Below are positions 29,597 through 59,494 of a DNA stretch of 64,000 bases, piece after piece. Every line of letters begins with the position of its first letter. The first letter of the stretch is position 1. Made by a program: the position numbers and the translations under genes. The stretch lies in the sequence record OP617745.1; one strand, 5' to 3'. The notes beneath the pieces are model-generated. The model was not told the DNA's origin, searched no databases, and was given only the letters and a program-made list of their open reading frames with translations.

Positions 29597-30004
29597 ATGG
29601 CAAAGAAAAAGAAAAAGATTGACAGAACATTACGGCATCCTAAGTACAGAGTTCAATATCATGATAGTGAACAGATAGAAGTAGATTTGGGAGGTGGAAG
29701 TAGGTTAAAATATGCTAACAATGCATATGTGAATAATAAATTTGTATTAACATTGTATAAAAATTTCAAGTATCATTCAAGTAATGATCTTCTTGATTAT
29801 ACATTTATTAGTACTGAAGAAGAATTATTTCAGCATTCTTTGCTGTGTACTGTTGATATTGATTTTTCTGTACTGGTACAGTTACAGAAAGCTTTAAAGC
29901 ATCAAATGTATCAATATATTTTTCCAAATAAACTGGAAATGATTAACATGAAGAATAGATATGTTTTGGATATTACTGGTGCTGGGATTGAATTAGAAGA
30001 ATGA
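29597..30004 (+). CDS. hypothetical protein, FQxS-motif family
   Basis: TEEELFQHSLL. Confidence 0.8.
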   Translation: MAKKKKKIDRTLRHPKYRVQYHDSEQIEVDLGGGSRLKYANNAYVNNKFVLTLYKNFKYHSSNDLLDYTFISTEEELFQHSLLCTVDIDFSVLVQLQKALKHQMYQYIFPNKLEMINMKNRYVLDITGAGIELEE

Positions 30005-30189
30005 AAACAATATCGGAATCTGAGTACAATGAAATAGTTTCTGAATGTATTAGAAAACGCAATGGAAATTGTAATTTTGGTAATGTAAGAGGTAGAGAAA
30101 TTTTACTTATTGCATTTTTAGATACAAATTTACAAGAGAGCTATTATCAAGAATATATTAAACATTTAATTCATAGTTTACACAAATGA
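30001..30189 (+). CDS. small protein, LGTNxQ family
   Basis: IAFLDTNLQESY. Confidence 0.75.
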   Translation: MKTISESEYNEIVSECIRKRNGNCNFGNVRGREILLIAFLDTNLQESYYQEYIKHLIHSLHK

Positions 30190-30503
30190 AAATAAAAGAA
30201 CATAAAAAAGTACGTATAGAGAGAATGGGTAAATTATATACTTTTAATTACAATAATAATGTTATATTTTACAGTACTGTAATGAAACATTTCTATTCTA
30301 AGTACGGAGTAGTTCCTACATTTATAGATTTACCCAGTGATGAGTTATTCCAGCAATTATGTTCTTACGATGAATCAGAATTGGGATTATCTATATCTGA
30401 ATTTGAAGGATTACAGATATTGTTTAAATTCAATGAAATTCCTAATTTGTGTTATGTAAACATACAAGATGGATACAGTTATATCTATGAAGTTTTTAAC
30501 TGA
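30186..30503 (+). CDS. hypothetical protein, FQxS-motif family
   Basis: PSDELFQQLCS. Confidence 0.7.
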   Translation: MKIKEHKKVRIERMGKLYTFNYNNNVIFYSTVMKHFYSKYGVVPTFIDLPSDELFQQLCSYDESELGLSISEFEGLQILFKFNEIPNLCYVNIQDGYSYIYEVFN

Positions 30504-30694
30504 GGTCGCGTACAGCAATGAAAACTACTAAATTTGAATACAGAATTCAAGTATTTGATGAGGATATTTTGTGGTCTTACGAATATTATAAAAATGAGTA
30601 CAAGAGTGAAGCGATAGATAAGGTTCTGAGAAAAATGATACGATTAAAGTACTGAATAATCATCTAATATTAGAATTTTTTATAGAGAAGATAC

Positions 30695-30880
30695 ATGCAG
30701 GTTATTGTGTATTATACATCCTTGGAGATGACAGAGGAATATGTATTTCAATTAAGTACAGTACATGAATATTTTTCTGCTATTATAATGATTACAGAGT
30801 TAAAGAAAAGAATTAATCGCAAGATGCGTGTTCATGTACCTGATTTCAGTACTGAATTGATCAAGTACATTGAGATATAA
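30695..30880 (+). CDS. FQxS-motif family fragment
   Basis: TEEYVFQLSTV near the N-terminus; possibly truncated. Confidence 0.55.
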   Translation: MQVIVYYTSLEMTEEYVFQLSTVHEYFSAIIMITELKKRINRKMRVHVPDFSTELIKYIEI

Positions 30881-30953
30881 AATGTCTTGACATTGGCTTT
30901 TATTTTTGTTATTATAAACCATCATTATCATTTACAAAGAGTAAGAAAATAAA

Positions 30954-31598
30954 ATGACTACAAGTGAATTATCTGAACTGTTTGGAATTTTATCAGTACT
31001 GATGCCTAAGATTGAAAGTAATCCACATCATTTATTGAGTCCAAAAGCACAATCTATTTTCAGTATTGAAGAACTCGTGGATATGGAATATAATGTATAT
31101 CGTGCTTATTTCAAAGCTATTGAAAATGGTGAGATCATTCCAAAAGAATATCTTGTTAGTATTAATGAATTGAGTTCTTACACTCGTTGTGAAATCACTC
31201 GTCGTAAAAGTTATTATAATGCTACTTGTACTTGTGAGCGAGTATTAACAGTGAAAGAAAATTCACATGATTTTAATGTAATTAATCTTACTGATGATGG
31301 TAAAGTGAAAGAAGTTATGTATCATCCTACATCAGAAGAAATTATGATCAACAAAGGTGGTGTTTGGGGAAGTCGACATAAAATTAAAATTCCTAATTAC
31401 AAAGACTATGATGATGTTGATGCTTACATGTTTCAGTTAAGTACTGTAAAGAATATTAGTACTGAAGAAGAAAATATTATGAAGTTCTTTATGTTCTTAC
31501 AGAAGTTTAAAAGTTCACGAAAGCGTTTGCCTAAATTTAGTACAAACATTAAACTGATTTCATTATCTAAACTGCTGGAGTTGTATGACCAAAATTGA
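30954..31598 (+). CDS. hypothetical protein, FQxS-motif family
   Basis: DAYMFQLSTV. Confidence 0.8.
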   Translation: MTTSELSELFGILSVLMPKIESNPHHLLSPKAQSIFSIEELVDMEYNVYRAYFKAIENGEIIPKEYLVSINELSSYTRCEITRRKSYYNATCTCERVLTVKENSHDFNVINLTDDGKVKEVMYHPTSEEIMINKGGVWGSRHKIKIPNYKDYDDVDAYMFQLSTVKNISTEEENIMKFFMFLQKFKSSRKRLPKFSTNIKLISLSKLLELYDQN

Positions 31599-31863
31599 AT
31601 ACTATTCAGTACTGAATATTCAGGAAGTGTGTAATGAATTATACTTCACTCCTTATACAGAAGTATTGCGTTCTGTACTACAATCACTACAGAAGGAATT
31701 CAATGCAAAGTACAAAGGAACACCAGTACGAACAAAAAACAATGAATTTGTCTATGAGACTGTAATTGATTATTATATTATATCCTTCATTGATTGTGTG
31801 TTCAAAACTGATATTGGCTGTAACAGATATTTTGATGAAACCGTTATGATCATTGGGAAATAA
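31585..31863 (+). CDS. small protein, FNxKY family
   Basis: LQKEFNAKY; near-duplicate of 33880-34164. Confidence 0.8.
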   Translation: MTKIEYYSVLNIQEVCNELYFTPYTEVLRSVLQSLQKEFNAKYKGTPVRTKNNEFVYETVIDYYIISFIDCVFKTDIGCNRYFDETVMIIGK

Positions 31864-31866
31864 AAA

Positions 31867-32148
31867 ATGACTAAAGATGAATATAAATCTGTTTCTATTA
31901 TTAGAAAAATGTGTGATTCTTTTTACAGAAACACACAATACGGTACTGCTATGCGTTCAGTACTGAATACGTTATCAAAAGATTTTACTCATAAGTATCA
32001 TGGCCGAAAAATAAAAATTAATACTATTAATTCAGAATATTACACAAAAATTAAAAAATACAAGATTACATTAGGTGAATGTGATTTTCGTACTAACACC
32101 GGAATCAATGGTTCATTTTTTGGTGATTATGTGACGCTATGTGATTAA
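31867..32148 (+). CDS. small protein, FNxKY family
   Basis: LSKDFTHKY. Confidence 0.8.
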   Translation: MTKDEYKSVSIIRKMCDSFYRNTQYGTAMRSVLNTLSKDFTHKYHGRKIKINTINSEYYTKIKKYKITLGECDFRTNTGINGSFFGDYVTLCD

Positions 32149-32218
32149 AAATGTTTTTTTTACTTACCATGTTAGTACATAGAAAAACAACCATGATATT
32201 TAATATAAAGGAAAACGT

Positions 32219-32468
32219 TATGAAACAATTGTTTAAAACCATCTGGAATTCACTGTTTAGTAAAAATACCAGTACTGTTGATAGTACTGTTACTGTTACT
32301 ACAAATACACAAAGTACATACATTCCGGTATATAGCGATGAAAATCCATTCTATACAGAAGAAGAGAAGAAACAATGGATTGAGGATGAAGTACGTTTAC
32401 GTAAAGAAGAAGCAGAGCGTATGAAACTTGAAAAAAGTAATAAGAAATGCAACCAATGCAACAAATAA
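32219..32468 (+). CDS. hypothetical protein
   Basis: SD AAGGA before ATG 32219. Confidence 0.7.
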
Positions 32469-32638
32469 ATTCTGACTATTATTACAGTACTGTACAGTAC
32501 AATATGTATTTAAGTTCTTTTATGAATTTAAAAACGAGTTCAATAGACAAAATAAACAAAGACGTATATGAAAGTATATTGGGTTGTTTGAATCATAGTA
32601 TTCATACATTATATAAATTAAAAGGTACGTTGGGATGA
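32447..32638 (+). CDS. small hypothetical protein (LYxLxGxL tail)
   Basis: C-terminus shared with 32635 and 33576. Confidence 0.6.
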   Translation: MQPMQQINSDYYYSTVQYNMYLSSFMNLKTSSIDKINKDVYESILGCLNHSIHTLYKLKGTLG

Positions 32639-32817
32639 TTGATAATTACCAGCAAATAAAAATACTATCTGAGTATTATAAAATTGATACTAATTATATA
32701 GTACGGATGCCTGTGGAGTTGGATGAATCTTTACATAAGTGGAGATATTTTTCAGTACTACAGAATTTGAATTTTGTCATTAATAGTTTATATGAATTAC
32801 AAGGTAAATTACCATGA
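32635..32817 (+). CDS. small hypothetical protein (LYxLxGxL tail)
   Basis: NSLYELQGKLP. Confidence 0.65.
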   Translation: MIDNYQQIKILSEYYKIDTNYIVRMPVELDESLHKWRYFSVLQNLNFVINSLYELQGKLP

Positions 32818-33161
32818 AATATAAACGATGTGATGATGGATATCTGGCTGCCAGGTATTACAGTAAATTTGTATCTACAACTAATAAAGATGATCTGCTA
32901 TTACTTATGTTAGTAGGTACAATTAAACAAGAAATGGCGGCTGAAAGATATATCAACACGTTAATACATAAAATGGTACTTAAACACAGGCTGGTTAAAA
33001 TTAGAACTATTGGTGGTTATGAACCTTATAAGTTTGGTGTATTTTATCTTGACAATACCAATTTAGCTGCTTCTGATTCTATTATAATTTGTGAGTCCAT
33101 TGAAAAAGCGGTTCAGTACTGTAAAAATAATAATTATAAATTTATTGGTACAGAGGTATGA
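32814..33161 (+). CDS. LGTNxQ-family protein with C-terminal extension
   Basis: LMLVGTIKQEMA. Confidence 0.75.
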   Translation: MKYKRCDDGYLAARYYSKFVSTTNKDDLLLLMLVGTIKQEMAAERYINTLIHKMVLKHRLVKIRTIGGYEPYKFGVFYLDNTNLAASDSIIICESIEKAVQYCKNNNYKFIGTEV

Positions 33162-33164
33162 ATT

Positions 33165-33416
33165 ATGATGAGTTTAAAATTTTATGACCATTTACCGAAA
33201 AGTATAAAATTCAGTAATATACAATATTATACATTAGAAGATTGGGAAATGCATTATCGAAAGATACTCGGTTTTTCTTTGGGATTTGAAGAAACTGAGT
33301 ACCATGAAATATATTATAATTATTATATTGAAATATTAAAATGTATGATACATAAAGATTATGAAATTTTAATTTCCAGATATATAGTGCAGAGTAAAAA
33401 TGGATCAAGAAACTAA
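33165..33416 (+). CDS. hypothetical protein (degenerate LGTNxQ-like)
   Basis: ORF track. Confidence 0.65.
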   Translation: MMSLKFYDHLPKSIKFSNIQYYTLEDWEMHYRKILGFSLGFEETEYHEIYYNYYIEILKCMIHKDYEILISRYIVQSKNGSRN

Positions 33417-33567
33417 GAAGAAGTTAACAGAACTTATTGAAGCATCTATTAATGCTGAGGGTGCTTTCTTTGAGCACTACGATAAGTACGATAAAAAAGG
33501 ACGAGTATTGTGGGAGAAGCGTAATAGTACCAGGAAGGAGTTGGATGAATTTATTTCTAAATTGTGA
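33400..33567 (+). CDS. small hypothetical protein (55 aa)
   Basis: Manual ORF MDQETKKK... Confidence 0.6.
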   Translation: MDQETKKKLTELIEASINAEGAFFEHYDKYDKKGRVLWEKRNSTRKELDEFISKL

Positions 33568-33575
33568 GGAAATTA

Positions 33576-33767
33576 GTGAATAGTCCAAATGGTAGTGCAT
33601 CAAGAACCCAAGTGCATATGTTTTATATTAATTTATCTTATATTATCAAAGCAGGAAAAAACACTAAATTTAAATTGTACATAGATCTAAAGGAAAGGGA
33701 ATTAGATCAATTTAGCAAGTGTATTATAGAAATATACAAAATTCAAGGTAAGTTACCACCATTTTAA
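33576..33767 (+). CDS. small hypothetical protein
   Basis: GTG after SD GAGGA; EIYKIQGKLP tail. Confidence 0.6.
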   Translation: MNSPNGSASRTQVHMFYINLSYIIKAGKNTKFKLYIDLKERELDQFSKCIIEIYKIQGKLPPF

Positions 33768-33879
33768 TACATTCTGTGTACTTTTCACTTCAGACTCACC
33801 GTGTGTATTTTTAAACACTTGACATGTAGTAAGATCTGTGTTATTGTTATCATTGTAATAATAAAAATGGTACATTATA

Positions 33880-34164
33880 ATGACCAAAAGTGAATACTAT
33901 TCTGTACTGAATATTCAGGAAGTGTGTAAAGGTTTATACTTTACTCCTTATACTGAAGTTATGCGTTCTGTGTTACACTCATTACAGATGGAATTTAATG
34001 CAAAGTACAAAGGGACACCCATTTCCATAAAATGCTATAATGAAGATTTTGGTGTTTTAATTAATAGTTATAGTATAACATTTATTGTTTGTTATTTTGA
34101 AACATCGGGTTCTATGGCAGTGACAAGAAAATATTTTGATTCTGATACAAAGATTAGGAAATAA
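33880..34164 (+). CDS. small protein, FNxKY family
   Basis: LQMEFNAKY. Confidence 0.8.
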   Translation: MTKSEYYSVLNIQEVCKGLYFTPYTEVMRSVLHSLQMEFNAKYKGTPISIKCYNEDFGVLINSYSITFIVCYFETSGSMAVTRKYFDSDTKIRK

Positions 34165-34224
34165 AAATGGTGTAATCTTTTATACATCCAACAATCTTTA
34201 AAAATAACGGGTAATTACTGTATC

Positions 34225-34500
34225 ATGACTGAACAAGAATACAAATGCACAACGCATGTAATCGGAGTATTAGGTGATATTGAATCAAAGTATCGCAGTA
34301 CAATGCTTACTATCTTATCAATGCTACAAACTGATTTTAATAAAAAGTACGCACAAAGAAAAGTACAACTAACTGTAGGTTCAGGTGTTAAAACCAAAAC
34401 AATCAAAGGGTATTGTATTGGATTTAGATATGTGTATTTTACTATTACCAAAGGATATAAAAGAGATCATTTCAATGAATTCACTACTTTGTGTTCATAA
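34225..34500 (+). CDS. small protein, FNxKY family
   Basis: LQTDFNKKY. Confidence 0.8.
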   Translation: MTEQEYKCTTHVIGVLGDIESKYRSTMLTILSMLQTDFNKKYAQRKVQLTVGSGVKTKTIKGYCIGFRYVYFTITKGYKRDHFNEFTTLCS

Positions 34501-34509
34501 AGAGGGATT

Positions 34510-34776
34510 ATGAAAAGAGATAAACATTATAAACAAATTGAATTCATTTATAAACTCGCACGAAATAGTGATGCTTACACATATATTTCTTATGAATCAT
34601 ATCTCAAAGAAGTTGTTGTTTTGTATCTTAAAAAGTACAAATCAAAAAAGGTTGATTCTGGTACTTACATCATAGACGATATTAAATTTTTATACGGTGA
34701 ACTTCGTGTATACCAGAGAAGAGTAAGTGATGGTATGCTTTTGTGGGATTCTATCTGGAATACAAAAATAGATTAA
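34510..34776 (+). CDS. small protein, FNxKY-related
   Basis: LYLKKY. Confidence 0.7.
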   Translation: MKRDKHYKQIEFIYKLARNSDAYTYISYESYLKEVVVLYLKKYKSKKVDSGTYIIDDIKFLYGELRVYQRRVSDGMLLWDSIWNTKID

Positions 34777-34778
34777 TT

Positions 34779-35207
34779 ATGAAAACATTAGAAGAATTAA
34801 TTAGAATAAGTAAAAATATAATTTATATTAACAATATATTCAGTACTGGAAAAGGTCATCTTATTGTTGATGATGTTAGATACTTTTATTCCAACTCTAC
34901 TCATCCATGGTACAGTTCATTTTATGTTCGTGATTTTGAACCCGAGTGGGATTGTATTTCTTATTCGAGGGGTTTAAGTACAGTCACAACTATTTCTTCT
35001 ATGAAGGAACATACTCACACACTCGATTGTTCAGAATTTGATTTAAGTGAAGAGATGCTTTTTCAGTACAGTACAATGTATTCCAGTACCGAACTGGAAG
35101 CTATATTCGTTAAAGTGTACCTGGATAAATTCACTGATATAGATGAATTTTGTATAAATCTCTCACAATACCCTTCGTATTGCGAAAAACTTGGATTAAT
35201 ACCATGA
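34779..35207 (+). CDS. hypothetical protein, FQxS-motif family
   Basis: SEEMLFQYSTM. Confidence 0.8.
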   Translation: MKTLEELIRISKNIIYINNIFSTGKGHLIVDDVRYFYSNSTHPWYSSFYVRDFEPEWDCISYSRGLSTVTTISSMKEHTHTLDCSEFDLSEEMLFQYSTMYSSTELEAIFVKVYLDKFTDIDEFCINLSQYPSYCEKLGLIP

Positions 35208-35620
35208 GTTACAGGAGTTCATTATTTTTTGCACAAAAGGTATACTGTACCGTTCAGTGCTTTTATAATTCCGAATTTGATAATACCGTACTGAAAAAGA
35301 CAGGAAATGACAGTATATTTGAGTACTACGATTATCAGAATTTATTTTTTGATTACCCAGTCTTCAATACTACACAGATGGATTGTCATATTTCTCTGGA
35401 TTTTTCTTTTATGACATTCAATTCCTATAGTACAGGTTACATGTCACTTGATTCTGTTGTTAGATTAAATTCTAGTAAGATAGTACCAATTCATAGTAGT
35501 GAGGATTATGATTTCTTTAGTAATTATTATACTGAAAATGAATTGTTTGTTTGTACTGTATTTTCGTACCTAATTCTTAACAAATGTAAACCATTCTATC
35601 TGGATTTGCGTATAATTTAA
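35204..35620 (+). CDS. hypothetical protein, degenerate FQxS family
   Basis: C-terminal FSYL..KC.PFY.DLRII shared with 35691. Confidence 0.75.
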   Translation: MSYRSSLFFAQKVYCTVQCFYNSEFDNTVLKKTGNDSIFEYYDYQNLFFDYPVFNTTQMDCHISLDFSFMTFNSYSTGYMSLDSVVRLNSSKIVPIHSSEDYDFFSNYYTENELFVCTVFSYLILNKCKPFYLDLRII

Positions 35621-35690
35621 AGATAAGGATTTTAATATCATGTTAGGAATTTTCCCACTACAATTACAATGAAATATGGAATAAAGTATA

Positions 35691-36086
35691 ATGAAAAATA
35701 AAGAGTCCCTTTTTCTTGCTAAAAAGATATACAACACAGCACAACTTTTTTATAATTCAAGTTTCAACTGTACTGGATTTAAGAGAAGTTTTGTGGGGCT
35801 GGATTATGAATACAAATTTTCTAATTTAATTGTTTTCAGTACTGAAAATACTTACGGCTCTTTCTTTTCTTTTCAAAAAAATATTATACTTTTTGATAAT
35901 GAATTTACTGGTATAATTGAATGTGAATACAAAGATGGAACACGTAATTATCTTTCTGAAACATTGTCTTTACGTCAACAGTACCAGACTGCATATACAA
36001 AGGATAATATGTCAGTACTGACAATTTTTTCGTACTTAGTACAGATGAAGTGTCAACCATTCTATATGGATTTACGTATAATTTAG
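35691..36086 (+). CDS. hypothetical protein, degenerate FQxS family
   Basis: C-terminus shared with 35204. Confidence 0.75.
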   Translation: MKNKESLFLAKKIYNTAQLFYNSSFNCTGFKRSFVGLDYEYKFSNLIVFSTENTYGSFFSFQKNIILFDNEFTGIIECEYKDGTRNYLSETLSLRQQYQTAYTKDNMSVLTIFSYLVQMKCQPFYMDLRII

Positions 36087-36394
36087 GAGATATTCTTTTG
36101 CTAAAAATTCATTGTCATAACGGTCTTCTGTTTTGCAGTACTACAATACATAACGGAAGGTTGATTTACAACAAAAAAGACGATTCCTTTTTTTGTATCC
36201 ATAAGAATTCTGAAAAACCACACAAAATTATTGATTATTCTGCATTACAAGAGGATGAGCTTTTCCAGATGCATTTAGTATATGATAAAGTACTGAATTT
36301 GGATTTTCACACTTTAGTATATATTCAGAACAAAATGCGAGAATTATCAAAAATTTATACTGCTGATTTTAAGATTATAACACCTGAAATATAA
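36050..36394 (+). CDS. hypothetical protein, FQxS-motif family
   Basis: QEDELFQMHLV; start uncertain. Confidence 0.7.
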   Translation: MSTILYGFTYNLGDILLLKIHCHNGLLFCSTTIHNGRLIYNKKDDSFFCIHKNSEKPHKIIDYSALQEDELFQMHLVYDKVLNLDFHTLVYIQNKMRELSKIYTADFKIITPEI

Positions 36395-36395
36395 G

Positions 36396-36728
36396 ATGAA
36401 TAAAAATATTAGAACCAATCGTAATATGTGGTGCACTGTATATAAACTGATTTATTCTACTTTTACCCTTATACGATTAGTTAACAAAAATAATATAAAA
36501 ATTGATGTTTATTTCCATAACAACGGTAATAAAGAGTATTACTTAACAGAGGGTAACATATATGAAATTAATGATTTATCCTCTTTGAGTACTGAAGAAT
36601 ATTTTCAATTACTTACTGTATGGGACTATAAAACTGATATTGATTTTGTTATTTCTGCACATAAACGCATAGAGGAACTTAAAAAGGATGAGTTTTTCAA
36701 TCGTGTCGATACAGTGATTGAATATTAA
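36396..36728 (+). CDS. hypothetical protein, FQxS-motif family
   Basis: STEEYFQLLTV. Confidence 0.75.
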   Translation: MNKNIRTNRNMWCTVYKLIYSTFTLIRLVNKNNIKIDVYFHNNGNKEYYLTEGNIYEINDLSSLSTEEYFQLLTVWDYKTDIDFVISAHKRIEELKKDEFFNRVDTVIEY

Positions 36729-36894
36729 AAGAGTGTACTAAAAAATGATTTATGATGAAAATGTTAAGTATATAACACAATTCATAGTACTATCATACAC
36801 CAGATATGGCAGTTCTGGTTCCAGGTATATTGATAGTATACTTAAACAACATATTGAGTTTAATGTTATCGATAACAAGAAAGGTTAATTAGAA

Positions 36895-37359
36895 ATGGTT
36901 TTTGATACAAGAGAAGGTGCACTCTTTTATGCAAATCAAATATGTAATTTAGTTTTGTATTACAAAAGTAATGAAAATTTATTAGATGAATATAAATGTT
37001 TGTATTCTAAAGTCGATGATGTATTAAGAATTTCTTTAGAAATAGAACATAAAAACCCATTCCCTGAATCAATTATTGATTTTCAAGAAAAATATATTAA
37101 TTATATTCCAGGTAAAGAATGTGAATTAATTCTTTCCGATGTATTTGGTCATAGTAACAAAATCGATCCCAGTGTTCTAAATGAAGAATTGAATACCAGT
37201 ACAGAAGAAGGTTATTTCCAGAAGAGTACTATATACAATTCTGATGAATTGTTCTGTATTATTCTTTTTGAAAATATAGTGCGTAAAATTCCATTTCAAT
37301 TCTATATTGATTTAGAAATAATTAATGACATAATAAAAGAGAAAAATTGTGCGATATAA
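36895..37359 (+). CDS. hypothetical protein, FQxS-motif family
   Basis: TEEGYFQKSTI. Confidence 0.8.
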   Translation: MVFDTREGALFYANQICNLVLYYKSNENLLDEYKCLYSKVDDVLRISLEIEHKNPFPESIIDFQEKYINYIPGKECELILSDVFGHSNKIDPSVLNEELNTSTEEGYFQKSTIYNSDELFCIILFENIVRKIPFQFYIDLEIINDIIKEKNCAI

Positions 37360-37684
37360 AATATATAAAACCAACCACCTGGTTGTAGCTGAGTACCTTT
37401 GTGATAATATGTTAGATATGTTCGAAAATGAACATGATTTTGTTTTAAATTTAAGTACTAAAAAATTTAAGTTGAACTATTATGGTTCATATGCATTATC
37501 TGAACAATATTCAGTTGATTTAAATGATTGTACACAGATGCAGGATGATGAATTGTTTCAGTACTCTTTGGTTTTTGATTTTAATTTATTAAGTTTAAAG
37601 AATATTGTATTACTTCAGAAAGAAATGCTTGCAGTACAAGATGATGCAGATGGTAACATAGAAATTAATTTTCTTGACTTTTGA
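37349..37684 (+). CDS. hypothetical protein, FQxS-motif family
   Basis: QDDELFQYSLV. Confidence 0.8.
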   Translation: MRYKIYKTNHLVVAEYLCDNMLDMFENEHDFVLNLSTKKFKLNYYGSYALSEQYSVDLNDCTQMQDDELFQYSLVFDFNLLSLKNIVLLQKEMLAVQDDADGNIEINFLDF

Positions 37685-37744
37685 ATGTATACGTGATAAT
37701 ATATGTTGTATGGGTGATACAAAACCATAAAAGGGGAATATATA

Positions 37745-38119
37745 ATGCAGACAAATCAAGAAATACAAATAAAATTAAAAATTAATAATTATTTTAATAA
37801 AGTTGTTAGTGCTTCGTACAATGAAGAAGTTTTGTACGAAATAAATTATTCCATGAATTATTCATCCTTTTCATTTCGTGAGTATAATGGTATAACTTTA
37901 ATTAGATCTTATGTAATTCCAGTGATTGATTATACTGAAATGCAAGATGATGAATTGTTTCAGTACTCTTTAATATACGATCTGGAACATGTTATCCCCT
38001 TTGACTCTATGGTTGAATTACAGGGTATTATGAAATCATGTACACAATTAGACCAATTGCAGGGTGGTATTGAATACACATTTAGTACAATGAATAAGAA
38101 GAATTATTATGTACAATGA
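37745..38119 (+). CDS. hypothetical protein, FQxS-motif family
   Basis: QDDELFQYSLI. Confidence 0.8.
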   Translation: MQTNQEIQIKLKINNYFNKVVSASYNEEVLYEINYSMNYSSFSFREYNGITLIRSYVIPVIDYTEMQDDELFQYSLIYDLEHVIPFDSMVELQGIMKSCTQLDQLQGGIEYTFSTMNKKNYYVQ

Positions 38120-41562: not shown

Positions 41563-41563
41563 T

Positions 41564-47749: not shown

Positions 47750-47757
47750 AAAACACT

Positions 47758-50868: not shown

Positions 50869-50871
50869 AAC

Positions 50872-51480: not shown

Positions 51481-52040
51481 CATACGAAGAATACAAAAAG
51501 ACAATACCAGTACTCGCTGAAATTGTTTCATTACTAAAAAATCATCTAAGTAAAAGAACCATATACAACGATAGATTCTTCACCTTACCCAAATCCAATT
51601 TTTATATAAAACAAATCAATGATGCTGATGTTGACATTAGAATTTCAAAAAATAGTGATTCTATTATTCGCGTTGCAAAAGAATCACAGAGTTTTGATGG
51701 CGACATTCCATTGTTACTTCGTCAGTTCGGGGATGTATATTGTTCGTCCAGAAAACACCCAGGGTACATTAAAATATATTCAAGTGAAAGTGACATAGAT
51801 TTACTGGATGTTGACTGCCCAGAAGAGCAATTATTTCAATACAGTACAATTCTTTCTAATATAGATCTTATCGTACTTGAACTTGAGTTAGAACTTCAAA
51901 AAGTACTTGACGAAAATGTTTACTGTGTAATTACATTATTCTATGATAATGATTACTATAGTGAATGTGCTTCATACAATGATTATGTAAATCTACGAGA
52001 TGATTTAAAAGATGAAAAAAGAACATGGGAACATTATTAA
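51477..52040 (+). CDS. hypothetical protein, FQxS-motif family
   Basis: PEEQLFQYSTI. Confidence 0.8.
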   Translation: MTYEEYKKTIPVLAEIVSLLKNHLSKRTIYNDRFFTLPKSNFYIKQINDADVDIRISKNSDSIIRVAKESQSFDGDIPLLLRQFGDVYCSSRKHPGYIKIYSSESDIDLLDVDCPEEQLFQYSTILSNIDLIVLELELELQKVLDENVYCVITLFYDNDYYSECASYNDYVNLRDDLKDEKRTWEHY

Positions 52041-52596
52041 TAACTTAAAAGTTATTAAAGAATTAAGCACTGCTATGATTTTGTTGTACAAAAATACAGA
52101 CAAAATTAATGCTGATAATTATATTCTAAGTACAACTAGATTAAATCCATATGAAAATGGGTCAATGTACTTGAGAACAAAAGCATCTCAAAATATCATT
52201 GGAATTTTAAATGAATCTGTTTGCTTAGATGCATATGCAAACAAAGATGAAGAGGTACCCGGTAATTACAGGGTTATTATACGAGATTCGGCATTCTTCT
52301 TATGTAGTCCGATGAATCCATTTTTCAATAAAATATATGCTGATTTTAATTATACAAACGGTGTTGAAACTTTTCCTATTCCCAGTGAAGATACATGGGA
52401 AGAAGAGATGTTTCAACTATCATTAGTAGTACCGAATATGGTATGTACTGAAGTACTTGAATTATACAAAGAAATATACAATAATATTGAAAGGGATTTT
52501 TATATTTCATATGAATATGAAAATTATGATACCACATTATTAAAAGATGCATTAAATGACGTTAACAAATTTATCAAGCACTACATCAACAAATGA
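52012..52596 (+). CDS. hypothetical protein, FQxS-motif family
   Basis: WEEEMFQLSLV. Confidence 0.8.
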   Translation: MKKEHGNIINNLKVIKELSTAMILLYKNTDKINADNYILSTTRLNPYENGSMYLRTKASQNIIGILNESVCLDAYANKDEEVPGNYRVIIRDSAFFLCSPMNPFFNKIYADFNYTNGVETFPIPSEDTWEEEMFQLSLVVPNMVCTEVLELYKEIYNNIERDFYISYEYENYDTTLLKDALNDVNKFIKHYINK

Positions 52597-53134
52597 TACT
52601 GAAATGTACTTATTGTACAAAAATATTTTACTTGAATTAAAAAGATTGTTGCATACCGATAATGTACGCGATAATTATCTACATCAAGATATAAATGGTG
52701 AAATTTATTGTATAATTTCTGATGATAAAATCGCATTATATGCTAATTCCGAAAATATAGCATTCACTTATGTTTTATTTGCTTATTCGTTTAATTCACC
52801 AAATTACGTATCAGAAAAATATAGAGTAGAATATGATTCATATGTATACTTTGATCGTGCTAATTCAACTAATGAATATATGATTAATCACGAAACAAAT
52901 AATATCATCCAATTGATTAAAGAAAATGAGTTGAGTTCAGATGAATTAGAAAGTTTATTATTCCAACACAATACATTGTATTCAGATGAAGATAAATTTT
53001 GTATTTGGATGGATTATTATATCAGAGATTACATTGAAGATAAACATTATTTCTGTGTAAACTACAACAGACTAAATGAATTCAGTACTGACATATATGA
53101 AAATATTCTATTGGAATTAAAGAAATATGATTGA
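52556..53134 (+). CDS. hypothetical protein, FQxS-motif family
   Basis: LESLLFQHNTL; start uncertain. Confidence 0.75.
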   Translation: MTLTNLSSTTSTNDTEMYLLYKNILLELKRLLHTDNVRDNYLHQDINGEIYCIISDDKIALYANSENIAFTYVLFAYSFNSPNYVSEKYRVEYDSYVYFDRANSTNEYMINHETNNIIQLIKENELSSDELESLLFQHNTLYSDEDKFCIWMDYYIRDYIEDKHYFCVNYNRLNEFSTDIYENILLELKKYD

Positions 53135-53738
53135 ATTAAAATTTAAAATACAAGAACTAAAAGAACTGGTAATTCACTTAAAGAATGTAAATGATAAATT
53201 CCATCTCTCAGAAAATTTCATGATTTATATTCCAGGTACCGAATCAACACTCATTCACGAAATGTCAACAAAAGGGATATATTCCAATATTACATTGAAA
53301 TCAAGAGATTACAAAACTAATATCTATTGCAACACCATCTCTTTAATCAGGAGTTCAGATCCCTCTGAAGAACGTATCAGGAAATCTAAAACAGTAGGTT
53401 CAATTTATAGTAGTTCATGTAATATATATTCTTTATCCGATAATACCAAAATGCAGATTGGTATATATGAAAACTATCATAGAAAGTGTGATACCAGTGA
53501 AAATGGAACTATTGAATTGCCTGATTATGTAAAAGATTCTGATGAATTTGAAGCATTATTATTTCAATACAGTACAGAGAGTGATATTAAGTACAATAGA
53601 TTATTAAAAATGCGTATCATAAAAGAAATATATGATGTACTTCAATATGAAGAAATATCAATAGATGATACATTATTTGATTTGGATTCAAATGATTTAA
53701 AAACAATTATACAGGAATTGAAATTAAAATTATGCTAA
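53127..53738 (+). CDS. hypothetical protein, FQxS-motif family
   Basis: FEALLFQYSTE. Confidence 0.8.
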   Translation: MIELKFKIQELKELVIHLKNVNDKFHLSENFMIYIPGTESTLIHEMSTKGIYSNITLKSRDYKTNIYCNTISLIRSSDPSEERIRKSKTVGSIYSSSCNIYSLSDNTKMQIGIYENYHRKCDTSENGTIELPDYVKDSDEFEALLFQYSTESDIKYNRLLKMRIIKEIYDVLQYEEISIDDTLFDLDSNDLKTIIQELKLKLC

Positions 53739-54295
53739 CATTGTCCGAAATTCTGGAATACGATAATAAAATTATCAATCTCTTGGGTGATATATACTTT
53801 GAATTCAACAAAAAAGAAGATAAAAACAACAATAAAGACACTATACTGAAAGTAAATGATAGTGAATTAGTTGTATTAGAAAATAATCTTCATTTTTATT
53901 CTGTTGTACTTAAAGTGTATAATGGTATGTCAGAAACTCCGTGGTATATGGTGAAAAACACAGATGATTATGATACATTTCGTGGTATTAAACCATTCAT
54001 CAACGAGTATGGTATTTTTTGTACTGCAAATGATTACGATGTATTATATGATGAATACGATCAATTCGGTACTGTTCATAACGTATTCACAGAAGAACAA
54101 TATTCCTGTATAGAAAGTACTGCTTTTCAGTTAAGTACAGAGTTTGATTTACAAGTAGTAAGAGCATTAGCAATGCAAACCAATTTGTATTACAACAAAA
54201 GACACTATCAAATACTGTGTAATACAAAAATTCAGGATCATTTATATAATCCAAAATTAATTTTAAATCTAGAAAAATATCTGGAAACACTATGA
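53732..54295 (+). CDS. hypothetical protein, FQxS-motif family
   Basis: IESTAFQLSTE. Confidence 0.8.
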   Translation: MLTLSEILEYDNKIINLLGDIYFEFNKKEDKNNNKDTILKVNDSELVVLENNLHFYSVVLKVYNGMSETPWYMVKNTDDYDTFRGIKPFINEYGIFCTANDYDVLYDEYDQFGTVHNVFTEEQYSCIESTAFQLSTEFDLQVVRALAMQTNLYYNKRHYQILCNTKIQDHLYNPKLILNLEKYLETL

Positions 54296-54783
54296 AAGAA
54301 ATTATTGAATTAATAGAACTGATGCAGTCAAGTATAAGTTCATGTAAACTTGCAACCGGTGAACACAATTTGAATGCGGATTTTGATTTAGTAGTCAATA
54401 ATCAAAAGAAATGTATTCACTTGATTAAAAAATCCAGTACTAAAGCAATCAAACATACAGCACTCATGATAGCTTCTTCACATCCTGCTAAAAAATATAA
54501 TTCAAATATTGCTAATATAAGTTCACTGTACAAACCAGAAAGTATATCTTCATATATCAGTTCAATTAAAAGTGAATTAGATTTTCATAAATGCACTTTG
54601 GATTCTTATGAAGAATTAGAATTTCAGTACAGTACAGTAATTACACGAAGTGATATTTTTATAATTCAATGCTTGTTATATTCAATTGATTTTAAAGATA
54701 TTGTGTACATGACAAATGATTTTATGAAATATAATTATATTGAAATACTCAGATCATTAAAGGACAAATTATGCCAAAATTAG
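54292..54783 (+). CDS. hypothetical protein, FQxS-motif family
   Basis: YEELEFQYSTV. Confidence 0.8.
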   Translation: MKEIIELIELMQSSISSCKLATGEHNLNADFDLVVNNQKKCIHLIKKSSTKAIKHTALMIASSHPAKKYNSNIANISSLYKPESISSYISSIKSELDFHKCTLDSYEELEFQYSTVITRSDIFIIQCLLYSIDFKDIVYMTNDFMKYNYIEILRSLKDKLCQN

Positions 54784-55364
54784 ATGCACAGTACTGTGAT
54801 AAATTACTGAATGCATTGATTACTATACAAAAGAATATAAAAAAAGAAAAGAGTATTCAAATTTACTATAATGATAGTTATATTATTGTACAATGTAATC
54901 CAGATGGTAATTACGTAGAGTTCAGTTTTAAGAAAGAAGATGTTCATGATTGCATTAGTATTGATTTACATGAAGCAACACCACATCAAAGTTTAAAAAA
55001 TATTATTAAAGCATATAAAAGAACTACTTATGCATTTGACACTTTAGTTCACAGATATAAAACATTTTATTGTATGTTCGATACAGACGAATATGATTTC
55101 AATTTAGTAGGATTTGATGAAAATAACATCATTAACATTCCTTATGATTTTGATGATGAATTATATTTTCAGTACAGTACTTTATATAGTTTACCACCAC
55201 AGAGTGATCTTGAGCTTCACAAAAGTATTCATAAAAAATGCAAAAATGAACTACCAAATAAAAGTGTAGTTAGAATTTCATATCTATCCATCGAATTAGA
55301 TCAACAAGAAATGGATGAAATTCTGGAATCTTTGTATTCATTGGTTCCTGTGTTTAAGCATTAA
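54771..55364 (+). CDS. hypothetical protein, FQxS-motif family
   Basis: DDELYFQYSTL. Confidence 0.8.
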   Translation: MPKLDAQYCDKLLNALITIQKNIKKEKSIQIYYNDSYIIVQCNPDGNYVEFSFKKEDVHDCISIDLHEATPHQSLKNIIKAYKRTTYAFDTLVHRYKTFYCMFDTDEYDFNLVGFDENNIINIPYDFDDELYFQYSTLYSLPPQSDLELHKSIHKKCKNELPNKSVVRISYLSIELDQQEMDEILESLYSLVPVFKH

Positions 55365-55420
55365 AATCCCCCTTGACTGGGGTTTTTTTATTTGTTATAA
55401 TAAAAAATAGAGAATATAAA

Positions 55421-56047
55421 ATGAAAAAAGAATCATATAACATACTTCGTGTATGTGAAAATTTAATATTGCTGTTACTGGCTTATAAGAAAAATATAAA
55501 TTTAAGCAAGAAAATTCTTGATTATCATATTAATATTAATATTACTTGTAGTAATCATATTTCAATATATTTAAATATTAGTAATTTTGGTTCTATTACA
55601 ACAACATCATCCAACATAATTTCATTTAATGCTGATAATATTCAACCAGTTGAATTAAATTTACCAATTGAAGATATTAAAGGTGAAATGATTTATTTTG
55701 ATGACCGATATTGTGAATATGATGTTAATAGTCCAAATTTAGTAGGAGCGTATTTAAAAAAATATGATCCTGATATTGATGGATACAATGAAACAAACTG
55801 CCATGAAGTAATGGAAAAGACGTATGATGAATGGGCTTTTCAGTACAGTACATTATACGACTTTGTTCCAGATAAAGAAGATTATTTTTACTTGAAAAAT
55901 TTCATGCATAAATTGGGTAACGAATTCGATTATACATATTCAAACATTTTATTCGAATCAAAAGTGGATATTGTGAATCTAAAATCCGCAATTGATATAT
56001 GTACTGAAACTGTTAAAAGGAAGATTGATGAAAACTCCGATATTTGA
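55421..56047 (+). CDS. hypothetical protein, FQxS-motif family
   Basis: YDEWAFQYSTL; ATG 55421 after a terminator/promoter. Confidence 0.8.
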   Translation: MKKESYNILRVCENLILLLLAYKKNINLSKKILDYHININITCSNHISIYLNISNFGSITTTSSNIISFNADNIQPVELNLPIEDIKGEMIYFDDRYCEYDVNSPNLVGAYLKKYDPDIDGYNETNCHEVMEKTYDEWAFQYSTLYDFVPDKEDYFYLKNFMHKLGNEFDYTYSNILFESKVDIVNLKSAIDICTETVKRKIDENSDI

Positions 56048-56543
56048 AAAATCAAAGAAATATGCACAACGTATATCCGATTGCATTGAACTAATACAAT
56101 CAATGAGAAAAACTTTTTACATAAATCACAAAGGTTCTTTTCGATATCAACACGAAAGTAACGGAATTATTACCATGAGCAGAGGTAAATCACCTTTTGG
56201 TGAGGTTGTATTAATATATGTACCAGATAATATTCATGTTACGTTCATTGATAATTATCTAATAGAAATATCAAATTATATTCCAGTACAAGATTATACA
56301 GAAGAAACTGAATTTCAATATAGCACTTTGTATAATAATGAAGAATTATTAATGCATTATATATATTCCATTCTATGGAATTTGGACATTAAAGGTAAAA
56401 TTCATATAAACCCAAAAATAAATTTAAGAACATATACAATGGCATTGAAAAATATCAATAATTATTTTGAGATTACAAATTATAATTTATATAAAGAATT
56501 GTGTAATAAAAAATTCAAATCAATGGAAATAAACCACTTATGA
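56028..56543 (+). CDS. hypothetical protein, FQxS-motif family
   Basis: TEETEFQYSTL. Confidence 0.8.
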   Translation: MKTPIFEKSKKYAQRISDCIELIQSMRKTFYINHKGSFRYQHESNGIITMSRGKSPFGEVVLIYVPDNIHVTFIDNYLIEISNYIPVQDYTEETEFQYSTLYNNEELLMHYIYSILWNLDIKGKIHINPKINLRTYTMALKNINNYFEITNYNLYKELCNKKFKSMEINHL

Positions 56544-57124
56544 TTGAAAGATATGAGTTTAGTACAAGAATATTAAATGAAGCACTCAAAAAAGTGCCAT
56601 CAATTGTGGAAAAACATAGTAAATTATATTCTAAGTACAATAATAATAGTACATTCAATGTTGGTATTAAAAATCAGAATTATGAAACTAACATTGATGA
56701 TAGTTCCATTGAATATGGTTCAGCAAATGGTTCTTCATGGACAATTGAATTTGACAATTCACTCCATGATTATTATAACTGGACACCAGAATATAATGAA
56801 TTTAGCTTTAATACATCATCTGTTGCTTTTTTGGTTAGTAGTGAACATATGTTGTACGCTCTTTATGATTTTAATACTGAAATTTTTATAATTGAAGATA
56901 CCGATTTAACTTTTGAAGTAAATTGTATAGATTCTCTACGTGAAATGATTTTTACATTACAACTGGAGTACTCAGATATCATTGAGACTGAATTACTATG
57001 GAGTATGCTATCACCAATGATTGAGTTTAAAAAGTTGTTGACACCTGACAAAGATGTTGCTATTATATTTGAACCATATAGACAAGAGTTTTTAGAATTA
57101 AACCCAGAGATACCAAACACATGA
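56540..57124 (+). CDS. hypothetical protein, degenerate FQxS family
   Basis: LREMIFTLQLEYS at the equivalent position. Confidence 0.75.
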   Translation: MIERYEFSTRILNEALKKVPSIVEKHSKLYSKYNNNSTFNVGIKNQNYETNIDDSSIEYGSANGSSWTIEFDNSLHDYYNWTPEYNEFSFNTSSVAFLVSSEHMLYALYDFNTEIFIIEDTDLTFEVNCIDSLREMIFTLQLEYSDIIETELLWSMLSPMIEFKKLLTPDKDVAIIFEPYRQEFLELNPEIPNT

Positions 57125-57531
57125 TTCTATATCACTGTAGTACTGTAAAAATTGACAGCTTTTATATCCCCTTTGGTGGCTTACATTTTGGTGGTATTAA
57201 TAGTGCTTTAGAAGCTGCGTTACGTAAGCTGAGAAGCCCCAGAAACACCTTGGATCACAAGGAGATATATATCCATAAATGTTTTGTGGAACTCGGTAAA
57301 ATGCAACAAAGTGAGGATTTGGGTGGTGAGGATTCGTGGAGAGTGGTTATCGAAGAATGCTCACGATTAGGATTTAATTCAGTACAATACAAGAATGTAT
57401 ACGAACCTGATTCAGTTCCTAGTTATATGATTTTGGATTCCAGTAGAGTAAAAATCATAGAAGTGGATTGTATTCATATGGATGATGCCGAACTAATACT
57501 GGAAGAATTTTATGATTCATATAGTACTTAG
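57121..57531 (+). CDS. ADP-ribosyltransferase-like (ART-PolyVal-like) protein
   Basis: LYHCS...GLHFG...A...GFNSVQYKNVYEP...SYMILDSSRVK. Confidence 0.55.
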   Translation: MILYHCSTVKIDSFYIPFGGLHFGGINSALEAALRKLRSPRNTLDHKEIYIHKCFVELGKMQQSEDLGGEDSWRVVIEECSRLGFNSVQYKNVYEPDSVPSYMILDSSRVKIIEVDCIHMDDAELILEEFYDSYST

Positions 57532-57551
57532 ACTAATACGGGTAATAATTC

Positions 57552-58103
57552 ATGTCAGAACCAATAGAATATTTTAAAGCATGTTCTCGTTTAGTTAATT
57601 CAATATCAAAGGACTTTTTATCAAGAAAACCAAAAGAATATATTGATAACGTACTTGGATATAATTTTATATTATATTGTGGTTTTAGTTCATTGAGAAT
57701 TTCAGTTGATGATGAAAACGAAACACCAGTACTTACAATTTTTAATGTTGATTACATCACATGCAACCCAGAAGTATTTCATGAACCACGTTGGTGTCTA
57801 ACTAATATAGTTAACAGTGGTATTCAATGTGGTTTGGTGAAAAAAATTACCCACCGTTTTGATTCAGACAATGAACTCATAGTTCATGAGAATGATTTTA
57901 GTTCTAAGTTATTCTCTAATACTTTAACTGAAGAAGAATTTTTCCAGTACAGTACAGTACTTAAATTAAACACATTGGAATATTATCTGGAATGGAATAA
58001 AACTATAATGCAAGACAATACAAATGAAAAAGTTGTTTGGCATTGGTATTATGGTGATTTCATTTCAAAAGAAGCTATTGATGAATTATCAAAAAGAATA
58101 TAA
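57552..58103 (+). CDS. hypothetical protein, FQxS-motif family
   Basis: TEEEFFQYSTV. Confidence 0.8.
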   Translation: MSEPIEYFKACSRLVNSISKDFLSRKPKEYIDNVLGYNFILYCGFSSLRISVDDENETPVLTIFNVDYITCNPEVFHEPRWCLTNIVNSGIQCGLVKKITHRFDSDNELIVHENDFSSKLFSNTLTEEEFFQYSTVLKLNTLEYYLEWNKTIMQDNTNEKVVWHWYYGDFISKEAIDELSKRI

Positions 58104-58115
58104 TAAGGATTAAAA

Positions 58116-58595
58116 ATGATGCTTGACATTATCGGAAATTTAGATATAGTTAATCAAATCATTCAATCAGCAATTGATGATATTAAGAAGAAGGAGATTG
58201 AAGTACGATGGAATTTCTTATCGTCTGATATTGGATACCTTGTTGATATTAGTGAACCAACAAAGAAACAAATGGTTGTACAAATCAATGCACTAAGTAA
58301 CAGGCAATCTCTCTGTAAATTTTATATTACAAAGAATGGGATAATTCTCAGATATAATAATAAATTGTTGTTTGAATACAAAAACAGTACTAAAACATTC
58401 ATTACAAATTTATTTGATAAACCATTTTATATTGATGATTTAGAAAGTACTTTCTTTACTCAAAGATGTTTAAGTTCATTAGATAATATAGTATTTGATT
58501 ATGATATCATGACTGAAACATTAAAGAAAACACAGGATTTATATTATGCCTACTTGGTGTTTACCAAAAAACGAGAAAATGCTAACACAGCCTGA
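58116..58595 (+). CDS. hypothetical protein, degenerate FQxS family
   Basis: LESTFFTQRCL. Confidence 0.75.
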   Translation: MMLDIIGNLDIVNQIIQSAIDDIKKKEIEVRWNFLSSDIGYLVDISEPTKKQMVVQINALSNRQSLCKFYITKNGIILRYNNKLLFEYKNSTKTFITNLFDKPFYIDDLESTFFTQRCLSSLDNIVFDYDIMTETLKKTQDLYYAYLVFTKKRENANTA

Positions 58596-59025
58596 CGATA
58601 GCGTATATAAGTGTATTGAGCATTTCGATTATTTTATTAATTCAAACAAAGAATTTATTGTGGTCGATTGTATACCATTGTATTTCATTAAATCCGATTC
58701 AAATACAATCAAAGAATTTAATATGTACTATGGTAGTGAATTTATATCAATTAAATTAATCAATAAATATTTGAAAAATTCTTATTCAATTGAAAGTTAT
58801 TACAATGGAATATTTTTGCTCGGTATTAGTAATGAGTACATAAATTCAGTACTATTAAAATCAAACACAAATGAACCAGTTTATGCTGATCGAGAAGCAT
58901 TCAATGAAATCGATTTCTTCCAGTATACATGTGGTGATGCTTATATACCATTACACACCAATACGATGTGTTTAGTTAAAGATAAATTGTTGGAGATTGA
59001 AAATGATTTCAAAAAATACTATTAA
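58579..59025 (+). CDS. hypothetical protein, FQxS-motif family
   Basis: NEIDFFQYTCG. Confidence 0.75.
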   Translation: MLTQPDDSVYKCIEHFDYFINSNKEFIVVDCIPLYFIKSDSNTIKEFNMYYGSEFISIKLINKYLKNSYSIESYYNGIFLLGISNEYINSVLLKSNTNEPVYADREAFNEIDFFQYTCGDAYIPLHTNTMCLVKDKLLEIENDFKKYY

Positions 59026-59494
59026 AACTGGAATGCAATGTTTGATTGATTATTTTGAAAATCCAAAACCATACACTGAGGTACTGAAAGGTGATCACAC
59101 ATTTCATTACTACGGTGATTATATTCAGATTATAGTTGGATTTCATACATTAAAACTTTGTATTATTGATAATAAAAATTCAAATTGTTTTATTTTCTCT
59201 CCAGTAAAAATGCGAGAAGATGATATTTGCACCGAATTCGGTACTATTGTTGCTGTAATTGATGATGATGGTAGAAAAACACATGTATACGATACACTAT
59301 TCATTGAAAGTTCTACTTTGTTTCAATTGAGTTTAATTCACGATATTAATATTGATGGATTGGATATATTGATGTATAAGTATAGTGAATTACTTGAATT
59401 ACTAGGGAAATCTAAAATTAATCACAATACTAAATACATTAAAGAAGCATGTGATAATTTATCAAAAGCTCACGTGCAATACTCTAACGAATAA
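59003..59494 (+). CDS. hypothetical protein, FQxS-motif family
   Basis: ESSTLFQLSLI. Confidence 0.75.
   Translation: MISKNTIKTGMQCLIDYFENPKPYTEVLKGDHTFHYYGDYIQIIVGFHTLKLCIIDNKNSNCFIFSPVKMREDDICTEFGTIVAVIDDDGRKTHVYDTLFIESSTLFQLSLIHDINIDGLDILMYKYSELLELLGKSKINHNTKYIKEACDNLSKAHVQYSNE

Follow-up and report, generated by a model that had tools for sequence, protein, structure and literature searches.

A tandem multigene family of small proteins at a fixed position near the terminal repeat of RaK2-like jumbo phages

We analyzed a 64-kb stretch of the genome of Klebsiella phage KP13-7 (hereafter the window; 100% identical to positions 124001-188000 of record OP617745.1) and found that it carries a very large family of small paralogous proteins, which we call family A. 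KP13-7 is a RaK2-like jumbo phage of the genus Alcyoneusvirus with a genome of 357.7 kb, and every coding sequence in this region of the deposited record is labeled "hypothetical protein". As judged from sequence comparison, family A is a clade-wide, tandem, lineage-specific multigene family kept at a fixed genomic position. We tentatively propose, with a probability of about 45%, that its members are non-virion proteins acting early in host takeover or counter-defense, built on one scaffold with diversified surfaces.

The initial annotation of the window, made by reading the sequence without database searches, had reported a giant paralog expansion sharing an acidic motif, and this expansion is real. 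The pattern [ED][ED]xx[FYW]QxS was found in 29 of the 162 non-nested plus-strand open reading frames (ORFs) and in no minus-strand ORF, whereas 1000 residue shuffles of the same ORFs yielded 0.08 on average and never more than 2. An iterated hidden Markov model (HMM) started from 28 strict-motif seeds converged at 31 ORFs. The A2 profile, which comprises 104 sequences (31 window members and 73 database representatives), matched 36 window ORFs, including a partial and doubtful match at 15739 (ORFs are named here by their window start). In total, the window holds 35 firm members and 2 probable ones, 53127 and 53732, which carry the motif in register and are weakly alignable along their length. 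This is close to the 38 ORFs first proposed, to which about 5 degenerate ones had been added; five ORFs in the span originally assigned to the family (56540, 57121, 58116, 58546 and 59536) show no detectable relatedness and were rejected. Elsewhere in the KP13-7 genome, three more members lie 17-36 kb upstream of the window, at record positions 88353-88769, 89442-89831 and 106879-107409.

Family A proteins are 61-224 amino acids (aa) long and mostly acidic (isoelectric point, pI, 4.3-5.2). Their genes lie on the plus strand, which carries nearly all ORFs of the window, and overlap or abut one another in operon-like blocks. They cover 27.3% of the window, in agreement with the quarter estimated initially, and 53% of the bases between 28.5 and 59.5 kb. 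GC content drops from 33-37% in the repeat region before the array to 25-29% across the array. The densest part had been described as a nearly unbroken run of more than 20 genes at 45.5-57.1 kb; we count 19 firm and 2 probable members over 45.5-56.5 kb, with a single interruption by a small ORF of another family.

We examined the motif across 187 family A members from four lineages, whose overall identity is only about 15-20%. F and Q are each present in 99% of members and S in 91%, while the two acidic positions are E in 80% and 78%. The position after S is T or L in 97%, and the one following it is V, L or I in 89%. S or T stands before the acidic pair in 66%, and the fourth residue after it is aromatic or aliphatic. 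Between the motif and the C-terminus there are 41-84 aa, against about 30-70 aa in the initial annotation. It is written in varied codons, as initially observed: Phe is encoded by TTT in 22 cases and TTC in 9, Gln by CAA in 10 and CAG in 21, and Ser by AGT in 16, AGC in 4 and TCN in 8, with both serine codon families in use. Such synonymous variation at the F, Q and S codons points to selection at the protein level.

An AlphaFold model of the 135-aa member 46834, computed with 104 sequences, is confident (predicted local distance difference test, pLDDT, 87.7; predicted template modeling score, pTM, 0.83) and forms a single compact alpha/beta domain. It begins with an N-terminal helix, four strands and a short helix bearing the acidic pair and F-Q, and continues with a five-residue turn containing S-[TL], a long helix, an F-x-[ILV]-D-L strand and a final helix. 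The helix and strand downstream of the motif, already noticed in the initial reading, are supported by both this model and the member alignment. The motif itself makes up a helix-turn-helix corner whose pLDDT exceeds 90; no other region is predicted with greater confidence, either in this model or in a second one, that of member 49803 (31 sequences, pLDDT 67), in which the order of elements is broadly as in 46834. Predicted structures of RaK2 paralogs in BFVD align to the 46834 model with template modeling (TM) scores of 0.57-0.77.

Such [ST]-E-E-type starts followed by a hydrophobic residue are known from helix capping, where they form a capping box with a hydrophobic staple. The motif is thus read mainly as fold-defining, as the set of signals for the helix-turn-helix corner. 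In this model-based reading, [ST]-E-E followed by the aromatic would form a helix N-capping box, the F would be packed into the core, and Q and S would fix a tight turn into the next helix, which would start with its own D, S or N cap followed by acidic residues. Because corner-defining signals would be lost last, this could explain why the motif outlasts sequence drift to such low identity. The same corner might in addition contact a shared partner.

We then searched for relatives of this fold and of the sequences. Foldseek with the 46834 model found no relative in the PDB (best E 2.3), and the search with the less confident 49803 model was uninformative. The family A profile gave 0 matches against PDB sequences at E up to 10, no Pfam family was matched by more than one of the 104 members, NCBIfam gave no match, and in PHROGs the members are scattered over many groups of "unknown function". 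These searches agree with the initial view of the family as undescribed, and, provisionally, no solved structure is recognizable as a relative of the predicted fold.

The N-terminal parts had been called unalignable. They are indeed the more variable part and hold nearly all the length variation, but they are homologous: the A2 profile aligns most members over their full length, from the first residues, and an HMM built from the pre-motif columns only recovered 12 of 36 member fragments from Escherichia coli phage fEgEco12 and 5 of 16 from Klebsiella aerogenes phage fENko-Kae01 (17/52), against 0 of 87 non-member fragments. In the 46834 model, the N-terminal helix and the beta-sheet share one compact domain with the motif helices. 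The initial proposal of a hypervariable recognition domain joined to a constant docking motif is therefore not borne out, and the motif does not appear as an exposed or flexible segment separable from the rest. That proposal had itself taken uniform full-length structures with the motif buried in the core as a sign of ordinary paralogs, and uniformity, one half of this test, is what the compact model and the RaK2 paralogs point to.

The family is old and under selection. The best within-genome paralog pairs reach only 26-36% identity over substantial length, short local matches aside, which argues that the paralogs are ancient. A tandem-duplication signature persists nonetheless: for 37% of members the nearest paralog is at most 2 ranks away, a share that is 11% in the null. 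Compared with the related phage Muenster, KP13-7 is mosaic in the terminal-repeat region, while window 30725-58950 forms a single unbroken block of 28.3 kb at 96.2% identity. Nearly every member in the covered region has a one-to-one ortholog in Muenster, with a pooled ratio of nonsynonymous to synonymous substitution rates (dN/dS) of 0.21. Split up as the initial annotation had suggested, dN/dS amounts to 0.25 for the N-terminal part, against 0.125 for the motif together with the C-terminal part. Every copy is under purifying selection. At greater distance, a metagenomic contig (L006; 17.5 kb, GC 25%) carries one-to-one orthologs of window 41188-53127 in the same order at 34-58% identity. The claim of a very large paralog expansion under protein-level selection is thus upheld, while that of a fast-turnover arsenal is not, at least within the genus, where the array is collinear.

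Across genera the picture differs. Best matches between family A members score only 17-43 bits and are mostly partial, beyond recognition by BLAST, so that one-to-one cross-genus orthology is not resolvable. By comparison, non-family genes that lie within the array or directly behind it (57121, 59536 and 61407) retain 50-62% identity across genera. Given the collinearity within the genus, the content of the array is therefore stable while its sequence evolves much faster than that of its neighbors.

We further investigated how widely the family occurs. A tblastn search of 50,697 phage records with distant family representatives hit Alcyoneusvirus or nothing, and the resulting "genus-restricted" reading was overturned by HMM scans of the corresponding loci in relatives. 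These scans found 41 copies in fEgEco12 (genus Asteriusvirus), directly after its direct terminal repeat (DTR), which restriction digests have confirmed (PMC13070987); 18-21 copies at the same genomic place in fENko-Kae01; 32 copies in the first 50 kb of Muenster; and 9 in the metagenomic contig L008. The copy-number comparison proposed at the outset thus shows that 18-41 copies are kept in three genera. A profile search of 1.84 billion protein representatives returned 101 clusters only, all of 68-215 aa and none fused to another domain, and a homologue search with the family A alignment returned 6 proteins only. Foldseek gave hints of weaker relatives in phages 121Q and SP27 and in the Yersinia phages fHe-Yen9-03 and fHe-Yen9-04. 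In the literature, we found no account of the family, its motif or its fold. About 10% of RaK2 proteins were reported to be paralogs (PMC3622015), 22 paralogous ORFs were counted in phage CBB (PMC5259590), and a survey of jumbo phages covers other expansions, family A being absent from it (PMC7824862).

What these proteins do can be approached from where they are encoded. The case for early takeover or counter-defense draws on the position beside the DTR, the takeover-type neighbors, data from relatives, absence from a proteome, and divergence that is fast next to the conserved neighbors. Position 1 of Muenster, its end as defined by PhageTerm, corresponds to window 7310, and the end of the Muenster DTR to window ~27460. 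By homology, these two points would mark the left physical end of the KP13-7 genome and the end of a 20-kb DTR, which is collapsed in the deposited, circular record. The family A array would accordingly begin about 1 kb downstream of the left DTR, and the unique genome sequence has two outlying members, 1102 and 5909, at its right end. The Muenster depositors labeled neighboring genes as kinase, antitoxin-like, toxin-like and ADP-ribosyltransferase-like. An early role in host interaction is plausible from this position after the DTR among takeover-type genes, and this part of the host-interaction arsenal imagined initially finds support; its anti-defense or host-range part is inferred. In relatives, short ORFs beside the terminal repeat of CBB were suspected to be early host-takeover genes (PMC5259590), and the DTR genes of phage PA5oct are transcribed early (PMC7318152). 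None of ENKO_051-074 was flagged by liquid chromatography-tandem mass spectrometry among 220 proteins of a crude particle and large-complex preparation of fENko-Kae01 (PMC11218385), an indirect sign that the family is not part of the virion.

Under the takeover and counter-defense reading, one stable scaffold would display diversified surfaces, formed by its N-terminal helix and by a beta-sheet with variable insertions. A single scaffold that varies in its N-terminal part could allow each paralog to engage a different host or defense target. Expression would come from blocks of overlapping genes, each headed by a near-consensus sigma-70-type promoter. Five intergenic promoter candidates of this type, with a TG extended -10, lie at 29523, 30887, 33819, 44884 and 55373, and two of them follow terminator-like hairpins.

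Several observations weigh against this reading. In the AT-rich DNA of the array, promoter-like sites are no more frequent than in shuffled sequence, so the promoter matches are leads only. The conserved promoter module of the DTR is nearly missing from the array, which could therefore be a middle rather than an immediate-early region; the early class itself is drawn from position, promoter look-alikes and relatives. Within the genus, the array is stable and under purifying selection, unlike what a current arms race would be expected to produce. As for the structure, capping does not fully account for the near-absolute Q; a polar residue whose role is structural only is seldom so close to invariant. 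Finally, the absence of a known fold is provisional because Foldseek can miss small folds, and such misses do not prove a new one.

Alternative explanations were considered, the foremost being a hub-and-adaptor design in which the invariant corner docks all paralogs on one partner and the variable N-terminal part picks substrates, with the array-embedded ADP-ribosyltransferase-like 136-aa gene, the phage ClpP and host RNA polymerase as candidate hubs. The retention of F, Q and S at such low overall identity speaks for this design, and the N-terminal part is the more variable one in dN/dS and in fragment recovery, where a third of N-terminal fragments were found. Moreover, the ADP-ribosyltransferase-like gene, 50-60% conserved, sits inside the array in all four lineages examined, and a ClpP gene lies about 26 kb downstream. 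The idea is nevertheless weakened by the predicted structure, in which the motif is neither linear nor flexible but part of a well-packed corner of a compact domain. The acidic residues at which the motif starts are compatible with a capping box of the usual kind, members have homologous N-terminal parts rather than swapped-in domains, and the ADP-ribosyltransferase label of the 57121 product is not reproduced with HMMER-level tools. We consider such a design unlikely, and less likely still its specific version in which the F-Q-x-S corner would dock one shared enzyme, foremost the 57121 product, with the 35-41 paralogs as interchangeable targeting subunits. On a par with that version is an array resembling bacterial orphan immunity genes, in which each paralog would neutralize a different toxic effector of the host, such as those of toxin-antitoxin systems or abortive-infection toxins; this would be a special case of the takeover and counter-defense reading. 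Small, acidic, single-domain proteins in many divergent tandem copies suit it, and the Muenster depositors noted antitoxin-like and toxin-like proteins among the products of the adjacent terminal repeat. However, the family has no similarity to immunity or antitoxin families, the sole Pfam match (Imm25, E 0.08, in one probable member) being noise, and no cognate toxins are known.

We give even less credit to an enzyme family with the invariant Q and S and the acidic pair as active site. A few polar residues are near-invariant amid otherwise free-drifting sequence, as an active site would be, but it would be strange for one genome to hold at least 35 paralogs of a single enzyme, the acidic pair or the S is missing from several well-supported members, and the family has neither a nucleotide- or metal-binding signature nor a relative in fold. 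Jumbo phages carry paralogous head-internal proteins, and several members show Q followed by S or G, so that family A could consist of virion or injected internal proteins, or its motif (an aromatic, Q, then a small residue) could be a protease cleavage site, one that may resemble the site recognized by the protease of a plant virus (tobacco etch virus). The motif is, however, helical and well packed in the 46834 model, and no member was flagged in the crude fENko-Kae01 preparation, which makes this explanation very improbable. The same low standing goes to functionless duplicated filler that merely persists: the very low GC content of the region would suit it, but the pooled dN/dS, the collinear orthologs in the metagenomic contig and the retention of many copies in three genera speak against it.

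We next describe the members in order along the window; all features given are on the plus strand. The two outliers, which the initial annotation had correctly included, are 1102-1416 (104 aa, with motif; A2 HMM E 7e-5) and 5909-6517 (202 aa, basic with pI 9.7; A2 HMM E 5e-8). The first array block is preceded at 29502-29551 by a terminator-like hairpin followed by a sigma-70-like promoter with TG extended -10, a consensus match only. It opens with 29597-30004 (E 2e-10) and continues with a short form of 61 aa at 30695-30880 that contains only the motif and the C-terminal helices (E 8e-10, HMM positions 79-130). This short form is 98% identical in Muenster and may thus be either a functional mini-form or a recent truncation. 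After a near-consensus intergenic promoter at 30887-30915 (11/12, TG) comes 30954-31598 (214 aa, degenerate acidic pair, E 2e-5), and a further intergenic promoter candidate lies at 33819-33847 (10/12, TG). Next are 34779-35207 (E 3e-25); 35204-35620, a member without the canonical motif (E 1.5e-3, hhalign P 9e-6, 33% identity to 35691); and 35691-36086, with a degenerate motif (E 6e-7). Short forms follow at 36098-36394 (E 3e-13), 36396-36728 (E 6e-8), 37349-37684 (E 4e-8) and 37745-38119 (E 4e-10), among them the longer 36895-37359 (E 1e-24; phrog_9317 E 1e-38), and 41215-41562 (E 3e-10) lies further downstream.

The overlapping-gene block of 45.0-55.4 kb is preceded by a near-consensus intergenic promoter at 44884-44911 (11/12, TG). 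Its members are 45491-45865 (E 2e-25), 45880-46269 (E 3e-23), 46425-46847 (E 2e-22), the confidently modeled 46834-47241, 47219-47749 (E 8e-25), 47758-48279 (E 1e-17), 48269-48760 (E 3e-23), 48750-49241 (E 2e-25), 49213-49803 (E 1e-17), 49803-50300 (the first one modeled), 50287-50868 (E 6e-12), 50872-51480 (E 4e-22; phrog_22855 E 7e-96), 51477-52040 (E 2e-13), 52012-52596 (E 9e-14) and 52556-53134, in which N replaces S (E 3e-12). The two probable divergent members come next, at 53127-53738 (hhalign P 0.026 over 117 columns) and 53732-54295 (P 0.0085 over 124 columns), followed by 54292-54783 (E 7e-11) and 54771-55364 (E 9e-12). A terminator-like hairpin overlapping a sigma-70-like promoter (55363-55401; 11/12, TG) marks the boundary between two array blocks; beyond it lie 55421-56047 (E 2e-6), 56028-56543 (basic, pI 9.0, E 2e-19), 57552-58103 (E 4e-9) and the final member of the array, 59003-59494 (degenerate acidic pair, E 4e-4, hhalign over 133 columns).

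Embedded in the array is the conserved non-member 57121-57531 (136 aa). Its Muenster ortholog is labeled putative ADP-ribosyltransferase after an HHpred note of the depositors, a label that Pfam, NCBIfam and PDB profile searches did not reproduce; RecA matches seen in these checks were repeat artefacts. Orthologs at 50-60% identity lie inside the arrays of fEgEco12, fENko-Kae01 and contig L008, and H5, Y90 and E95 are invariant in an alignment of 17 homologs.

Two sister families accompany family A. Family B comprises 14 ORFs interleaved with family A over window 28570-46447 (28570, 28901, 29134, 30001, 32814, 38619, 38841, 42103, 42279, 42431, 44292, 44485, 44681 and 46226), which encode helical proteins of about 60-120 aa with an L-G-T-N-x-Q ... 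Y-I core and cover 10% of the bases in 28.5-59.5 kb. It has 31 copies in fEgEco12, 12 in Muenster and 11 in contig L006, and none was detected in fENko-Kae01. Family C consists of 8 ORFs of about 90-110 aa in window 31585-40672 (31585, 31867, 33880, 34225, 38290, 39806, 40063 and 40355, and perhaps 40669); Muenster carries 9 copies and contig L006 carries 3, and the family was detected in neither fEgEco12 nor fENko-Kae01. Neither family has a Pfam match.

The repeat region before the array has features of its own. The homolog of the DTR (window 8377-26321) contains about 17-25 occurrences of a conserved promoter module, made of a -35 TTGACA, a spacer with the palindrome CAGTACTG at its end, and TATAAT with an extended -10. 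The module is often followed by a conserved hairpin in the 5' untranslated region that carries the same palindrome in its loop, directly before the ribosome-binding site, and the module might serve a regulator as its operator. The plus strand of the window contains 155 copies of the heptamer AGTACTG, chiefly at 4-28 kb. A GC-rich repeated element, with the core CCCACAGGGTGC followed by GTATCTATAG and reverse-complement partners close by, is found at 8420-8515, 9856-9962, 16518-16567, 18679-18716, 22661-22710, 24623-24660 and 26187-26224. It has no Rfam match and possibly represents terminators or structured RNA elements between early genes. Transfer RNA and Rfam scans of the window found nothing. 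A 194-aa ORF of the repeat region, 24728-25312, has a weak Pfam Pkinase match below the cut-off (E 1.6e-4), and its homologs in Muenster and fENko-Kae01 are labeled putative protein kinase.

RaK2-like jumbo phages are under development against Klebsiella and E. coli, and about 80% of their genes lack an assigned function. Our analysis turns some 37 "hypothetical proteins" per genome, and about 22 more in the two sister families, into defined families; for family A, the outcome also includes a profile and a confident structural model, together with its fixed address in the genome and its distribution across the clade. About 30 kb next to the terminal repeat thereby gains a concrete, testable identity. 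If family A does serve host takeover or counter-defense, it would rank with the largest repertoires that any phage is known to build on a single scaffold. If instead its members dock a shared enzyme, they would form a combinatorial host-modification system that directs one activity to many host proteins through a fold without known relative. Should they prove ordinary, a large block of viral dark matter will at least have been named.

Earlier resources contain parts of this picture. The PHROGs groups phrog_12674, phrog_9317, phrog_22855, phrog_13866, phrog_35972 and phrog_18780 hold the same proteins from RaK2-like phages as "unknown function", splitting the family into small groups without its motif, fold, copy number, position or function. 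The RaK2 and CBB papers give paralog counts at BLAST level, in which family A is not defined. For the embedded gene 57121, a small gene of the early region, ADP-ribosyltransferases of the Alt, ModA and ModB type of phage T4 offer a possible parallel, by virtue of the depositors' label and the invariant H, Y and E; they differ in that profile searches do not reproduce the label, and 57121 does not belong to family A.

Genome-end sets for host takeover are known from the SPO1 host-takeover module, the T5 pre-early genes and the terminal-repeat genes of Kayvirus. Like the family A region, these sets and that of PA5oct (PMC7318152) comprise many small uncharacterized genes at a genome end, probably transcribed by host RNA polymerase. 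They consist mostly of unrelated small genes, however, and not of one family with about 40 copies, and family A lies just outside the repeat, without the repeat's own promoter module.

Poxviruses and asfarviruses carry multigene families for host range and immune evasion near their genome ends. They resemble family A as tandem paralog arrays near termini in which one scaffold bears diversified surfaces; this is an analogy only, as they share no homology with family A and infect hosts of another domain, and the function of family A is our inference. Among lineage-specific expansions in other jumbo phages is the zinc-ribbon family of Bacillus phage G, with about 35 copies (PMC7824862): in both cases, dozens of copies of one small domain are found in a single giant phage genome. 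The expansion in phage G involves a different domain, whereas family A has no detectable relative, spans at least three genera and keeps a fixed position.

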